Assembly (NCBI GenBank): GCA_002269645.1
Contig: NIVC01003734.1
Location: 15,671-79,670, forward strand
Length of the DNA stretch: 64,000 nt
Reading direction: 5' to 3'
Origin: Macrostomum lignano
Lineage: Eukaryota
Part shown: positions 41,052 to 64,000 of the stretch, one piece after another
Layout: each line of letters begins with the position of its first letter
Position numbering within the stretch: the first letter of the stretch is position 1
Notes under the pieces: generated by a model
What the model saw: only the letters and a program-made list of their open reading frames with translations
The model's database searches: none
Told to the model about the DNA's origin: nothing
Position numbers and translations under genes: made by a program

Positions 41052-44000
41052 ATGCGTCTGACGGTGCTGCTTCTGCTCTCCGTTGTGGTGCTTCTGGCTC
41101 TCACTAGCGATGTTAGCGACGCCCGAAGATCGAAGCCGTGAGTATAGACCGAATTAGCTTTGCCAGTTACACTACTTAAAGCAGGCTAGTGTCTCAACTT
41201 GCTTGGATCAAGTTTGCTCATGTCGGCTTTCGCGAATAAATTTTCAGTCGCTGGGCCAGACGATGTTTTCGAAAGCTCGGAAAGACGGTGAAGCGTCTGA
41301 AAAAGCTGGCGAAGATCAGGAAGATCCGCGCTAGAAGGGCCAAAAGGTCCTGGGCAAAGCGCATGGTCGCATGTGAGTGCAGTCCCTAATGTATCTGTGC
41401 AGTGCATTGTCTATGGAACAAACTGTAACAAGCGAATGATTCCCGGCTCGATGCTCGACTTTCAGCCATCAAAAAGTGCGGTCGGAGGCGCTGCGGAAGG
41501 CGGCAGCGATGCGTCGTTCGGCTATCCAGGAGGAAGATTGGCCGAATCTCCCGCCGAATCGCCCGGTTACGACGCCGCTACCGCAAGAAGAAGGCCAAGA
41601 TCAATCGAAAGTTTCGAGCTGCCATTCGCCGCAGCTTGAAACGAGTGAAAACGGCGGCCGGTCGCAAAGCGCTCTCCAGCAAAAAGTCCAAGGCCAGAAA
41701 GGTTGTCAACAAGAGGAAGAAAAAGCTTCGCAGGCGAACCAGAAAACGACTGGTATCCCTGAAGCGGAAATTGCGCCGGGCTCGACGAGGGTCGAAGAGG
41801 TGCGTGTCCAGGAGACGCCGCAGCTCGCGAAGGAGACGTGGTGAGTATTCACTTTGTCGGCTGTATGAAAATACGGTGCAGTGTATGCGGCCCTAATCAT
41901 AAAAACATCGCTTCTACTTCCGATCCTACAGGCGTGCGGTGCGGCCGAAGACGCTGCAGCATTCGTCAGCGATGCGTCGCCCGACGATCCAGAAGACGAA
42001 TCCGACGAATCCGCCGCCGAATCTCCAAGCTGGGACGATCGTATCGCAAGAAGCGGGCTAAAATTAGCCGCAAGTTGCGCGCCGCCATTCGCCGCAGCTC
42101 TCGACGCGTCAAATCGCTGGCCGCATGCCAAAGGCTCTCCAAGAAGCGATCCAAGATCAGAAGGGCAGCCAATAAGCGAGTAAAGAAAGTTCGCAGGCGT
42201 TTTAGAAAGCGACTGGTATCATTGAGACGCCGACTGAGAAGAGAACGAAGAGGATCAAGACGTTGCGTGTCTCGAAGGAGAAGACGCGGTAAGCCATGGA
42301 ATATTTTTCGAGTAATAGACTAAAGTCACACACACACACACACACACACACACACACACACACACACACACACACACACACACACACACACACACACACA
42401 CACACACACACATATATATATATATATGTGTTATATATATTTGCTCCTAAAGGTGTTCAATGTGGCCGAAGACGCTGCGGAAGACGTCAGCGATGCATTG
42501 CCCGACTATCGAGCAGAAGAATCCGCCGAATCCGAAACCGAATATCCAAGGTAAGACGATCCTATCGAAAGAGACAGGCCAAAATCAGCCGAAAATTCCG
42601 CGCCGCCATTCGCCGGTATTCGCGATCGGTAAAGTCAGCAGCAGCACGTCAAAAACAAGCCAAAAAGAGGGCTAAGGCCAGAAAAATTGTCCGCAAGCGA
42701 ACTAGAAAGCTTCGAAATCAAACTAAAAGAAGACTGCGATCTCTGAAGCGCAAATTGAGTAGAGCTCGGCGACAATCAAGAAGGTGCGTTTCACGAAGAC
42801 TAATTAGATCCAGAAAAAGACGCTCCTTGAAACGCCGTGCCAACCAAAGAAGACGCTCAGCGAGAAGACGTGCTAACCGAAAGAGACGTGGCAGCAAGAG
42901 ACGATCGAGGAGAAGCCGAAGACGTGCCAACCGAAAGAGACGTGGCAGCAAGAGACGATCTAGGAGAAGCCGAAGACGTGCCAACCGAAAGAGACGTGGC
43001 AGCAAGAGACGATCGAGGAGAAGCCGAAGACGTGCCAACCGAAAGAGACGTGGCAGCAAGAGACGATCTAGGAGAAGCCGAAGACGTGCCAACCGAAAGA
43101 GACGTGGCAGCAAGAGACGATCTAGGAGAAGCCGAAGACGTGCCACCCGAAGAAGTCGAAGAACGAGAAGACGCGCCAACCGAAAGAGACGTGGCAGCAA
43201 GAGACGATCGAGGAGAAGCCGAAGACGTGCCACCCGAAGAAGTCGAAGAGCGAGAAGACGCGCCAACCGAAAGAGACGTGGCAGCAAGAGACGACCTAGA
43301 AGAAGAAGACGTGCGACCCGAAGAAGTCGAAGAGCGAGAAGACGCGCCAACCGAAAGAGACGTGGCAGTAGGAGACGATCTAGAAGAAGCAGAAAACGTG
43401 CCACTCGAAGAAGTCGAAGAGCGAGAAGACGCGCCAACCGAAAGAGACGTGGCAGCAAGAGACGACCTAGAAGAAGAAGACGTGCGACCCGAAGAAGTCG
43501 AAGAGCGAGAAGACGCGCCAACCGAAAGAGACGTGGCAGCAAGAGACGATCTAGAAGACGCCGAAGACGTGCCACCCGAAGAAGTCGAAGAGCGAGAAGA
43601 CGCGCCAACCGAAAGAGACGTGGCAGCAAGAGACGATCGAGGAGAAGCCGAAGACGTGCCACCCGAAGAAGTCGAAGAGCGAGAAGACGCGCCAACCGAA
43701 AGAGACGTGGCAGCAAGAGACGACCTAGAAGAAGAAGACGTGCGACCCGAAGAAGTCGAAGAGCGAGAAGACGCGCCAACCGAAAGAGACGTGGCAGTAG
43801 GAGACGATCTAGAAGAAGCAGAAAACGTGCCACTCGAAGAAGTCGAAGAGCGAGAAGACGCGCCAACCGAAAGAGACGTGGCAGCAAGAGACGATCTAGG
43901 AGAAGCCGAAGACGTGCCACCCGAAAAAGTCGAAGAGCGAGAAGACGCGCCAACCGAAAGAGACGTGGCAGCAAGAGACGATCGAGGAGAAGCCGAAGAC

Positions 44001-61700: not shown

Positions 61701-64000
61701 TAAGTTTTAGTTTTGAACCAGTGTACAGAACGCATTATTGTAACGAATTTAATTATTCGCCCTCCAGGACGCTGTCCAAGCGGCACCAGAACGACGCGGT
61801 ATTTCTGCATCCGCAAGCGTTGCCCGAAATTCTTCAGGCGCGTTGGGCAGAGCTGCGTTAGAGGTTTGATGATCTTGATGCTGACTAGATATCTTTAACA
61901 ATGCTGGATTAGATCTGTGCAGACAATAGTTCAAGAAATTTTCACCTGTTCCTTATGATGACCTACTTCAGCTCGCTGTCCCTCCGGCTACGTGGCCCGC
62001 TCCTACCGCACTAGAGTGTATCTCAAGCATCGTGTTACCGGATACACCAAGAAGTGCACCTGCATTAATGGCAAATCAAGTGCCAAGCCACGGGCAAACT
62101 CCATCGATGTGGCTTTTGTAGTTGACGTGAGCGGCAGCATGGGCCGAGTCATCAGCGCCATCAAGAAAAACATTGTCAACGTCATCAACGTCAACGCTAA
62201 GTCCAGAGTGGTACGTAAAATAAAATCAGCGGAAATTCCCCCTCATCCATCAGGACAATTTGAAAATGATTAATCTTAAACCTTCCACTGTGTCTCCTCA
62301 ATTCAGGTGGACAAATTCATTCTCGTGCCGTTCGCGGACCCAAAAGTGGGACCAGTGACAATCAGCAGAGGTCGGTCCCGCCTGCACAAGAGCAGGCTTA
62401 TCAAAGCGGTCAGGCGCATGCGAGCCAGCGGTGGCGGCGACTGTCCGGAGATGAGCCAGTCCGGCATGTACGAGGCGCTCCGGCGCGTCAAGCGAAACTC
62501 CATCGTCTACGTGTTCACTGATGCCAGTCCGTCGAGACGAGACAAACGGTTGGAAATTTCACTACTTGATTAAACAGTTATCTTTAAAATATTTGCTACA
62601 AATAAACAATCATGCAATAAACCCTTCTAGTCTAGTGCAACAAGAAAATGAAGTAAAAATAAACCATTTGAAACTCCTATTACAGACGACAGGCCGACGT
62701 GCTCCGGCTGTCGAAGAGCAAAAACGTGCAGCTCAACTTCCTGCTCACCGGTCCAATGTGCGGCAAAAGGAATTCGTACAAAAACTTGTCAAAGAAATCG
62801 AAAGGTGCCTGGATCAAAATGAAAAAGGTCGACAACGCACCGCGTTTTGCGCTTCCTCAGCAAGGCCATCCCCAAGGGCGCCACCGCTCTGAGGATGCTG
62901 AACCGGCGCGGACTATCCTCATTCATCAAAGCAAGGAAAACATGCACTTGCCACCGCATTGCCAGAATGAAGGCCCGTTACAAGTACGTCAGCTCGGTCA
63001 AATGCTTTGTCAGGCCTCGGCCAAGCACTGGCCGCTGCTCCAGAATCCTGAACCAGCGAAGGCGACTAAGACGCGCAGCCCAGCTTTACCGGCGTCGCAT
63101 GAGAATTGGCAGGCGGTCAGCGCGGCGAAGAAGCGCCAGGCGATTCCGGGCAGTCAGAAGGCAACTGCGAGCGATTGCAAGAAACCTGAGACGCTGCTAC
63201 AGAAGCAAAACAAGAAGTAAGACGGGCAGCTTCAAAATTTTCAAAATATAAAATTATTTAAATGCTAAGGAAAATTCAGAATTAAAAAAACTATATTTCG
63301 TCAAAGTACTCTCTTGCAAAAGGAAACTAACAAAAAGTCACTAGGATTAAGTTCTAGAGTGGAGTGTATGAGACCAGTATATTATATAATGCTGTGTCAA
63401 TCTACAGAATAGTTGAAGCAAAGAGACTGATGAAGAAAACATAAAACTCGTTTCTTTTTAATAACCTTCAGATTTGTGCAGAAAGGTCAGATGCGGACGG
63501 GGTAGACGCTGTTTCGTCCGAAACATGCGCCGCCGTTTCGGATCTGTCTACCGCTACGTCAGAACCGCATCCTGCAGGCCTGTCAGGAGTAAGAATTTTT
63601 TTTGTAATCCTTCTGGTTCATTCAAGTATTTTTAAGGAGACAAATTCAGTCTCTGAATAACATCACTTGTGTGGCAAAAACTGCTTTTATAGATCTGTGC
63701 AGAAGAGTCCGGTGCAAGTCGGGTTATCGGTGCCGAGTTTCATACCAGCGCAGAATAGTGACGCAGCAGGTGACTCGATTCGTCAGAAAGTGTCCATGCC
63801 GCAAGGTCCTGGTTAAGCCATCCGCCTCCAAAAGAAGACAGGCCTGCGTCGACATGGCGTTCGTTGTAGACACCACAGGAAGCATGGGCAGAGTCATCAA
63901 AGGAATCCGGTCAAGCATCAAGCAGATTGTGGCTGCAAACAGGCGTACAGTCAGTCGCTTCGTCATCTCTGCTTTCAATGATCCAAAGGTAAGGATTAAA
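58705..64000 (+). CDS. Giant secreted Arg-rich protein 2 (3'-incomplete): Arg-Ala repeat, CPxG Cys repeats, at least two vWA domains
   Basis: Signal peptide MRLTVLFLLSVCLFLALTSDVGES. Proposed exons 58705-58781, 58903-~60517, 60601-60819, 60898-61301, 61481-61531, 61634-61678, 61768-61863, 61972-62210, 62307-62548, 62686-~63219, ~63471-63587 and ~63693-63988. Several single-base indels (~60243, ~60430-60510, ~62825) must be corrected to keep the frame. Confidence 0.8.
62100..62765 (+). other. Hemicentin/VWA7-type vWA domain 1 of gene 2
   Basis: IDVAFVVDVSGSMG (DxSxS MIDAS), FILVPFADP, GGGDCPEM and IVYVFTDA, spread over three exons. Confidence 0.85.
63845..63988 (+). other. vWA domain 2 of gene 2 (N-terminal part)
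   Basis: VDMAFVVDTTGSMGRVIKGIRSSIKQIV...FVISAFNDPK, followed by a GT donor at the window end. Confidence 0.8.

Follow-up and report, generated by a model that had tools for sequence, protein, structure and literature searches.

We asked what is encoded by a striking group of open reading frames (ORFs) in a 64,000-nucleotide (nt) window of eukaryotic DNA, the whole stretch analysed from contig NIVC01003734.1, in which the locus under study covers positions 41052-64000. Frames rich in lysine and arginine (K/R, 30-62% of residues) and poor in aspartate and glutamate (D+E, at most 5%) lie on the plus strand at 41.2-52.7 kilobases (kb) and 58.7-63.3 kb; the others in the window are one incidental alternative frame within the gene for pre-mRNA processing factor 8 (PRP8) and a minus-strand frame of 41 amino acids (aa) at 60348-60470, within the second gene described here. 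A previous sequence-only reading had proposed a tandem locus for giant secreted polycations, and two paralogous genes do lie side by side. Our analysis supports both as real, selected genes for secreted-type, extremely polycationic multidomain proteins, and we lean towards regarding them as tandem members of a lineage-restricted flatworm family of very large, secreted, disulfide-stabilised polycations with a cohesive or matrix role.

Gene 1 runs on the plus strand from 41052 to about 52750 in 16 exons, joined by 15 GT-AG introns of 74-187 nt and with zero in-frame stops. Intron 1 is in phase 2 and the other 14 of the 15 (introns 2-15) are in phase 1. The product has about 3,184 aa and about 396 kDa, with 40.3% Arg, 10.8% Lys, 9% Ala, 3.6% Gly, 0.7% D+E, 75 Cys and a net charge of about +1,605. 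Gene 2, on the same strand, extends from 58705 to beyond 64000, and its 14 exon pieces in the window encode 1,298 aa (26.0% Arg, 7.4% Lys, 16.9% Ala, 5.0% Cys). With D+E at only 1.5% there as well, the extreme basicity and scarcity of acidic residues claimed earlier hold for both proteins, as do their signal peptides. From the ATG at 41052 gene 1 reads MRLTVLLLLSVVVLLALTSDVSDA, a textbook signal peptide, and from the ATG at 58705 gene 2 reads MRLTVLFLLSVCLFLALTSDVGES; 17 of the first 21 residues are identical, and both first exons end with a phase-2 GT donor. The gene 1 ATG lies 8-9 nt 3' of a good acceptor (tttcag/actcaaaATG, 41040-41051), itself placed immediately after a tandem-repeat block, an arrangement that points to a distant 5' exon or to spliced-leader trans-splicing. 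This block is a 35-nt repeat (40000-41022; 29 copies in a scan from 40000, 97% matches) ending about 30 nt 5' of the start codon. The gene 2 ATG also lies 8-9 nt 3' of an acceptor (tttgcag/acaacaagATG, 58690-58704), and a GTAAGT donor upstream at 58608 (58607/58608) would give an 89-nt intron in the 5' untranslated region.

The way in which the sequence has diverged shows which frame matters. Among the three K/R modules M1-M3 of gene 1 (63-68% pairwise protein identity), the ratio of non-synonymous to synonymous rates (dN/dS) is 0.14-0.25 in the K/R frame, with synonymous sites saturated (proportion of synonymous differences, pS, 0.58-0.69), and 1.05-2.08 in the other two frames. Exon 9 of gene 1 compared with exon 13 of gene 2 (63472-63588) gives a ratio of non-synonymous to synonymous proportions (pN/pS) of 0.36, and above 1 in shifted frames. 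Variants among the copies of the repeat array in exon 5 are 9 synonymous to 6 non-synonymous in the Arg frame, against 2:13 and 3:12 in the others. The K/R frame is under purifying selection.

Relatives were sought by a HMMER scan of 1.84 billion representative proteins with exon 13 of gene 1 as query. Only two proteins matched, P0141 (6.6e-24, 53% identity) and P0142 (1.5e-22, 42%), both unreviewed Macrostomum lignano entries named 'SUEL-type lectin domain-containing protein'; a check for identity to a characterised protein, suggested with the earlier reading, thus returned unreviewed M. lignano proteins only. A third member from this species is P0143, of 2,245 aa, and the uncharacterised homologues in the M. 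lignano proteome are A0A1I8I5M9 (P0141), A0A1I8GDF5 and A0A1I8JAD7. These matches point to a macrostomid-type flatworm as the source of the window, in line with the flatworm origin guessed earlier. The M. lignano members are 35-56% identical to both window genes, and the homologues have the exact words FKNRVRTVARCI and LKRAVVSYYK in common with exons 12-15 of gene 1. A single predicted protein, P0143, has SUEL and VWA_4 domains together with cysteine knots, K/R modules and a CPxGY array, and P0141 additionally carries VWD, TIL, VWA, five EGF_CA and fn2 domains, without a C-type lectin. The family appears to be lineage-restricted, with its modules shuffled among paralogues. Word-index protein searches gave no close relative, a weak negative because the proteins returned seemed confined to those near the query length, and nothing relevant was found in the literature linking Macrostomum with SUEL or rhamnose-binding lectins, or rhabdites with basic proteins. 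In P0141 (A0A1I8I5M9), the residues from about 1150 to 1330, which separate the CPxGY array from the VWD domain, are non-basic, poor in Cys and garbled in appearance. This points to an intron that was mis-predicted or to two adjacent genes that were fused in the gene model, which matters for deciding if one gene or two was the ancestral state.

Gene 1 is assembled from phase-1 exon modules, each of them a two-disulfide knot of the CREMP/follistatin-N-like kind. Every K/R stretch has an invariant Cx4Cx5C on its N-terminal side and a closing (A/S)xC(V/I) on its C-terminal side. The third and fourth cysteines (C3-C4) are 13-25 residues apart in the short knots, encoded in both genes by small exons of their own; in the modules with a K/R insert this spacing is about 95-170. 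The Cx4Cx5C with its CxxxxCxxGxxC signature is invariant (13/13 aligned modules), and a profile built from the 13 knots matched the solved four-module CREMP (PDB 9pgb) with E = 1.1e-8. CREMP is a structural fibre protein of the eggshell membrane that also has VWFD and C8 domains and is prone to coacervation; its modules are truncated-EGF, follistatin-N-like two-disulfide units (Cx4Cx5Cx8C, C1-C3 and C2-C4) shaped as a loop over a small beta-hairpin (bioRxiv 10.1101/2025.09.16.676614), and modules of this type are sometimes annotated as follistatin-N-like or truncated EGF. The likeness extends to the tandem arrangement, the Cx4Cx5C spacing, the signature and the setting in an extracellular structural protein with von Willebrand-type domains, with the alignment covering only the N-terminal half of the module. 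Unlike CREMP, which is not polycationic and keeps C3-C4 almost invariantly at 8 residues, the present modules break the 8-residue rule, their spacing running from 13 to about 170 and being filled by K/R helices or a SUEL domain.

The earlier view of the K/R regions had missed these apparently folded, disulfide-stapled modules. M1 and M2 follow the order Cx4Cx5C, K/R helical hairpin of about 95 aa, closing Cys. AlphaFold2, run on M1 with an alignment of M1, M2 and M3, returned a predicted local distance difference test score (pLDDT) of 89.8 and a predicted template modelling score (pTM) of 0.67. In the model, three short strands at the N-terminus precede two antiparallel helices (21-59 and 63-107), after which a last strand (109-114) comes back to the knot and pairs with strand 13-18 in a manner compatible with C1-C3/C2-C4 connectivity. 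The beta-hairpin of the knot is predicted to be drawn out into an antiparallel helical hairpin of about 90 residues coated with K/R. The conservation of Ile, Leu, Val, Phe and Tyr positions, like the hydrophobic periodicity of 100 degrees, is consistent with a seam between the two helices. Weak Pfam matches to FliG_N, Vps54 and DnaJ-like_C11_C were judged to be compositional noise.

The two SUEL domains (Pfam PF02140) read earlier in gene 1 are both complete (47032-47289 and 48419-48676). The spliced protein matches the profile with 141.7 bits against a cut-off of 31.4 (E = 9.5e-42), and the Pfam match of lectin 2 has E = 2e-22. Both have eight Cys, FYGRT and GDPCVGT(Y/F)KY(L/M), in keeping with the eight cysteines and the YGR, DPC and KY(L/M) motifs of SUEL/rhamnose-binding lectins such as those of the fish CSL3 type, and a word-index search with a SUEL exon gave only generic rhamnose-binding lectins at about 40% identity. 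Unlike the classical rhamnose-binding lectins, small proteins of 2-3 tandem domains, these would be single domains set in polycationic stalk modules of a 400-kDa protein. Each sits between C3 and C4 of its module, flanked by K/R arms of 53/52 and 56/52 aa, and in three of the four arms the strongest hydrophobic periodicity is at about 100 degrees. In M. lignano P0141, SUEL again lies between the two arms of an M1-homologous module (the N-arm 49% identical, the word LRRARRGSKRCV in common in the C-arm), and the order knot-arm-SUEL-arm is common to P0141 and P0142. Because of the C3-C4 position, the symmetry and periodicity of the arms and the layout of P0141, we infer that the two lectins of gene 1, which are of the galactose/rhamnose type, may be displayed at the tips of cationic helical stalks.

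Exon 5 encodes a different kind of basic sequence, an array of about 1,250 aa (42839-46579) in which 44 ANRKRRG motifs define 43 complete units of ANRKRRGSKRRSRRSRRR[ATRRSRRARRR]. The units are 18, 28 or 29 aa long, all lengths being multiples of 3 nt, and since strongly hydrophobic residues are absent (zero), the array is probably a disordered, protamine-like polyelectrolyte. Its composition (RRSRRSRRRA...) resembles that of protamines, and it would bind polyanions similarly; protamines are small nuclear proteins without a signal peptide, so that the likeness is chemical only and does not amount to membership. The +1 frame relative to the Arg frame (42837-46340, plus strand) is open over 1,167 codons as an extremely acidic repeat, PTERDVAARDDLGEAEDV..., a mirror image of the polycation. 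As copy variants there are 2 synonymous to 13 non-synonymous, it is probably a by-product of the AGA/CGA/GAA codon composition; a more speculative idea is that this acidic ORF could in principle provide the array with its own counter-ion. Intron 4, just upstream of exon 5, contains a perfect (CA)43 microsatellite (42327-42412). At the 3' end of the gene (52040-52625) lies an 86/87-nt tandem repeat followed by a 24-nt repeat. The C-terminus (stop 52290 or 52675) is ambiguous, lying as it does in a tandem repeat with copies out of the K/R frame. Each 86/87-nt copy carries GGGGTAAAT donor-like and CGCGTCTCAG acceptor-like sites, and an AATAAA follows at 52742-52747.

In gene 2 the signal peptide is followed by an Ala/Arg region of 369 aa (58904-60010; 46% Ala, 33% Arg) with strict two-residue alternation. 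This is a pattern of the beta-strand type, and one could speculate that polyanions trigger beta-sheet formation. About 25 CPxGYxxxGxxC units follow (60131-61990), for which AlphaFold2 gave one beta-hairpin per unit at a pLDDT of only 65; together with the Cx4Cx5C knots of both genes, they bear out the earlier report of many short disulfide modules. VWA_4 domain 1 (PF25106) is complete in three exon pieces (62103-62827, model positions 2-165 of 169), the match scoring 148.3 bits against a cut-off of 27 (2e-43); the VWA profile (PF00092) scores 31.9 against 23.8 (1.9e-7). Domain 2 (DTTGS) starts at 63848 and continues to 63988, where a GTAAGG donor leads the gene past the window. Where von Willebrand factor A (vWA) domains bearing a metal ion-dependent adhesion site (MIDAS) had been claimed, the domains stand, with the DxSxS motifs DVSGS and DTTGS and the beta4 Asp (FTDAS) of a candidate MIDAS in which the Thr could not be assigned. 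The strong profile match, DxSxS and GGGDCPEMS, which we take to be a hemicentin/VWA7 signature, make this a hemicentin-type VWA, in an entirely different protein context and with putative metal binding. A search of solved structures with the gene 2 VWA found no sequence relative, and a word-index search found one Logan fragment at 39% identity.

Exons 12-14 of gene 2 are 54-56% identical to M. lignano P0142. Two places in the gene looked like frameshifts. The one at about 60245 is better read as a 62-nt intron (60214-60275), since splicing yields a unit, CPKPYVRRGAR/GSRCIKRMRIIC, that matches M. lignano CPQSYIRIRTRRGFRCIRFYRIC collinearly. At 62842 the earlier gene model needs a 1-nt correction. 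The sequence KKVDNAP/VLRFLSK around the break aligns with M. lignano KVNKVLSFIRR, and residues 3-72 of P0142 align to 62826-63044 in the downstream frame at 48% identity. No intron of at least 30 nt fits there, and a 35-nt intron (62829-62863) was rejected, since it would remove the conserved VLRFLSK. An assembly or allelic error could explain the break, as could a disabling mutation of very recent origin.

How do these proteins compare with the polycations known from flatworm glue? In Mlig-ap1 of Macrostomum lignano (GenBank MH586844), K/R (GRK) sequence amounting to more than 3,600 aa surrounds a core of C-type lectin, vWD, C8, TIL and EGF domains. This protein is the cohesive component and acts through charge: its K/R regions are needed for cohesion, attachment is prevented by heparin, and release is prevented by adding polycations (PMC6410801, PMC8621496). 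The proseriate and polyclad glues of Minona and Theama contain a stand-alone GRK(HS) polycation with a gene of its own, ap3 (PMC6745481, PMC9229212). After knock-down of Mile-ap3 the adhesive vesicles lack their dense core (PMC6745481); Tmed-ap3, also a secreted polycation, is 3,700 aa long (PMC9229212). Like Mlig-ap1, two-thirds of which is extremely basic K/R sequence, the present genes belong to the same animal group and encode giant secreted proteins with a signal peptide, very large K/R regions and lectin, von Willebrand-type and Cys-rich modules; the M. lignano homologue P0141 even has VWD-TIL-EGF_CA, as in the Mlig-ap1 core. Unlike Mlig-ap1, with its GRK low-complexity flanks, C-type lectin, vWD-C8-TIL and 17 EGF domains, they are R-rich with 3.6% Gly, combine disulfide-stapled helical modules with a protamine-like array, and have SUEL and VWA_4 domains, so that the earlier comparison with a K/R-rich Macrostomum adhesive of a different domain set was accurate. 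Like Mile-ap3 and Tmed-ap3, gene 1 encodes a secreted polycation of several thousand residues with a signal peptide, and its place beside gene 2 recalls their separation from the gene for the domain-rich core. By description, the ap3 proteins differ in being nearly pure G/R/K/H/S low complexity without lectin or cysteine knots; taking more than 80% G/R/K(/H/S) low complexity without domains as the mark of this type, gene 1 falls outside it, with its Cys modules, two lectins and 9% Ala. By domains and composition, then, the family would fit the flatworm kind of polycation and belong to neither ap1 nor ap3. With Mlig-ap1, Mile-ap3 and Tmed-ap3 established as giant polycations in flatworm glue, and with homologues already in the M. 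lignano proteome, the term 'novel system' used in the sequence-only reading was an overstatement; of its interpretation, the polycationic, secreted-type tandem paralogues are supported, the functional idea is a reasonable proposal, and the claim of novelty shrinks to a structurally distinctive variant.

By analogy with these systems, a secreted polycationic cohesive or matrix protein is the most likely role. Both proteins would be stored in secretory granules and, once released, contribute to a cohesive material or matrix, as for Mlig-ap1 and Mile-ap3/Tmed-ap3. They would hold together by binding polyanions electrostatically and multivalently, for instance glycans that are sulfated or acidic, the glycocalyx or surfaces. 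The SUEL domains could add specific binding of Gal-type O-glycans on a partner glycoprotein; Mlig-ap2 carries Gal-beta1,3-GalNAc (PMC8621496), plausibly the type of ligand that SUEL recognises. The VWA domains might form metal-dependent protein-protein cross-links, the disulfide knots would give mechanical stability, and competing polyanions could dissolve or release the material. A two-component material, coacervation and any particular tissue would likewise be conjectures from analogy. More tentatively, we propose a new principle of architecture: truncated-EGF (CREMP-like) knots would act as staples for projecting polycationic helical-hairpin spikes, some of them lectin-tipped, and a chain of such spikes plus a protamine-like tail would make up a particle charged to about +1,600. 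With the VWA/(Ala-Arg)n partner next door, this could make a switchable material, set by polyanions and released by polyanions, and an unrecognised adhesive or matrix component restricted to Macrostomum.

Several observations weigh against the cohesive or matrix role or against parts of the model. Tissue and function are proposed from sequence and analogy. The high pLDDT on the long helices of M1 comes from a three-sequence alignment and may be over-confident, and fold searches found nothing significant, either with the K/R module model (best E 0.38, generic helical hairpins) or with the model of the gene 2 Cys array (best E 0.8, EGF, furin-repeat and TNFR-type folds). The placement of SUEL at stalk tips is deduced from the layout. 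An intact 400-kDa secreted product of gene 1, with its 268 furin-type RX[KR]R motifs, would need protection from convertases. Pfam detected no C-type lectin, vWD, C8, TIL or EGF_CA in the window proteins (gene 2 extends past the window), no 5-mer of the Mlig-ap1 peptide SRKPRRKNRKSRKP was found in them, and it is by the published description and this epitope peptide that they are set apart from Mlig-ap1. Lastly, gene 2 has its one 1-nt break, against none in the 7-kb coding sequence of the neighbouring PRP8 gene.

Other readings of the locus itself have to be weighed. The idea that it holds no gene, its purine-rich tandem repeats reading by chance as poly-Arg, can point to an array that is a GA-rich minisatellite with an AT skew of up to 0.74 and to a second frame that is open as a poly-acidic ORF; it is effectively refuted, and its probability is close to nil, given a signal peptide, 15 frame-preserving GT-AG junctions, Pfam domains, dN/dS far below 1 and conservation with the M. 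lignano homologues. That gene 2 is a decaying paralogue and gene 1 alone functional, which is compatible with the other readings of gene 1, we consider unlikely. The 1-nt break near 62842 does fall within a conserved segment, no intron explains it, and the assembly looks accurate elsewhere, with the 13 PRP8 exons intact; however, the 13 other junctions of gene 2 are clean, the exons 3' of the break are open and 48-56% identical to M. lignano, the first suspected frameshift proved to be a 62-nt intron, and the break, next to a short run of T, might be an error of assembly or an allelic one. It is very unlikely that the two genes are one very large gene with two promoters, in which the donor GG/GTAAAT at 52288/52289 (phase 2) is spliced to the phase-2 acceptor at 58903. 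The phases match, and in M. lignano P0143 the K/R modules run directly into the CPxGY array within one predicted protein; yet gene 1 ends with a stop and an AATAAA signal, gene 2 opens with a paralogous signal-peptide exon of its own, 6 kb of retroelement debris separate the two, the join would cross an out-of-frame, non-K/R repeat copy, and the M. lignano model may itself be a fusion.

If both are genuine genes, their product might still be something other than a cohesive material. SUEL lectins were first found in eggs. This origin would suit a reproductive secretion rather than a locomotory glue, that is, an egg-shell or cement-gland material coating or attaching eggs, or a matrix of the seminal fluid or ejaculate, and so would the fast divergence (35-56% identity to the M. 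lignano members) and the young arrays (97% identical copies), both typical of reproductive proteins. The knot modules also match an eggshell-membrane structural protein (bioRxiv 10.1101/2025.09.16.676614). We find this reading rather unlikely, however, as nothing in the sequence is specific to reproduction and adhesive proteins are equally fast-evolving and repeat-rich (PMC8621496). A defensive or antimicrobial polycation, either a rhabdite or mucus component binding microbial surfaces and glycans or a polyprotein cut at dibasic sites into short Arg-rich peptides, would account for a protamine-like array without strongly hydrophobic residues and for the RX[KR]R sites of gene 1, and microbial rhamnose or galactose might be bound by the lectin domains. 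Protamine and eosinophil major basic protein are examples of polycations that kill microbes. We judge this improbable, for there is no conserved non-basic 'payload' between the cleavage motifs, and purifying selection acts on the conserved, disulfide-stapled modules of amphipathic helices that hold most of the K/R sequence, which suits a folded scaffold better than a precursor.

Coordinates of the features of the locus and its surroundings (window positions; exon ranges in order; empty cells, nothing reported)
Feature	Position	Strand	Basis or remarks
Gene 1 exon 1: start codon and signal peptide MRLTVLLLLSVVVLLALTSDVSDARRSK, then phase-2 GTGAGT donor	41052-41137	+	direct reading
Gene 1 exons 2-4: basic N-terminal segment and K/R modules M1, M2	41248-41372, 41466-41840, 41932-42288	+	GT-AG phase-1 chain
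Gene 1 exon 5: K/R module M3 and protamine-like array	42453-46580	+	ORF and tandem-repeat output
Gene 1 exons 6-7: knot KCGKFRCGRGTSC, 53-aa K/R arm, SUEL lectin 1, 52-aa K/R arm, closing Cys (GRCAF)	46655-46879, 47012-47467	+	
Gene 1 exons 8-9: two short Cx4Cx5C-x13-19-C knots, without long insert	47561-47668, 47754-47870	+	exon chain, alignment
Gene 1 exons 10-11: knot, 56-aa K/R arm, SUEL lectin 2, 52-aa K/R arm, closing Cys (ARCV)	48029-48235, 48399-48848	+	
Gene 1 exons 12-15: one short knot and long K/R-insert modules	48931-49026, 49111-49986, 50075-50980, 51063-51530	+	exon chain
Gene 1 last exon and 86/87-nt tandem-repeat tail RRFWGKSRRFSRRLRRRVSRRARRVS	51718-52677	+	frame stop 52290-52292; alternative-frame stop 52675-52677
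Gene 2 exon 1: start codon and signal peptide paralogous to that of gene 1; phase-2 GTGAGT donor	58705-58781	+	direct reading
Gene 2 exon 2: Ala/Arg region, basic linker, first CPxGY units (from 60131)	58903-60213	+	
Gene 2 exons 3-8: array of two-Cys CPxGYxxxGxxC units	60276-60517, 60576-60819, 60898-61301, 61481-61531, 61634-61678, 61768-61863	+	
Gene 2 exons 9-11: last CPxGY unit and VWA_4 domain 1 (DVSGS, GGGDCPEMS, FTDAS)	61972-62210, 62307-62548, 62686-62841	+	
Apparent 1-nt frameshift in gene 2 (...KKVDNAP / VLRFLSKAI...)	62842	+	frames read directly; conserved frame continues 3'
Gene 2 exons 12-14: post-VWA Cys/K/R segment, two Cx4Cx5C knots, start of VWA_4 domain 2	62843-63216, 63472-63588, 63693-63988	+	
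gag-like ORF, 282 aa	54608-55456	-	CCHC-type knuckles; no Pfam match
Non-LTR retrotransposon ORF2 C-terminal-like fragment (...ETWTLT...RRQRLQLAGHIIR...)	55625-56077	+	
20-nt tandem repeat, 25.6 copies	56149-56648		
PRP8, complete	13009-29641	+	13 exons, 2,405 aa

The surroundings of the locus include one well-conserved gene. All junctions of PRP8 are GT-AG, and its exons, each 67-94% identical to human PRP8, align as a single block without an internal frame break, for which reason the assembly looks accurate across about 7 kb of PRP8 coding sequence. Its product is lengthened at the N-terminus by a long Pro-rich stretch, minisatellite arrays take up most of several introns (289-2,611 nt), and a PRP8 exon used in the word-index protein search gave just short fragments of at most 75% identity. 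Near 12 kb the GC content steps from 31-37% (1-12000, repeat-rich and without clear genes) to 45-61%, and a C-rich tandem-repeat block without convincing coding signal lies at 34-38 kb (GC skew -0.46 to -0.52). The spacer between gene 1 and gene 2, of about 6 kb, contains retroelement fragments. Rfam and tRNA scans of the window gave no match, and the Logan contigs with P0018 and P0020 are AT-rich exons from other organisms.

The locus is a structurally distinctive variant of a known flatworm theme of polycationic secreted proteins, and represents a second, uncharacterised giant-polycation family. Temporary adhesion in flatworms is among the few biological glues with a worked-out model of attachment and release; according to those who study it, what the huge K/R regions do 'remains enigmatic' (PMC8621496). 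In the present family such basic sequence takes the form of a conserved, selected and apparently folded module bearing lectins, as opposed to featureless low complexity, and the spike architecture, if true, could explain what structured K/R regions do. Its units of 35-125 aa are expressible, and would allow one to ask how charge works together with disulfide stapling and glycan binding in an underwater material that is reversible. Even if the proteins turn out to form an egg coat, an ejaculate or a defence material, they would still embody an extreme design of protein polyelectrolyte, and the two genes provide new candidates for RNA interference (RNAi) screens in Macrostomum.

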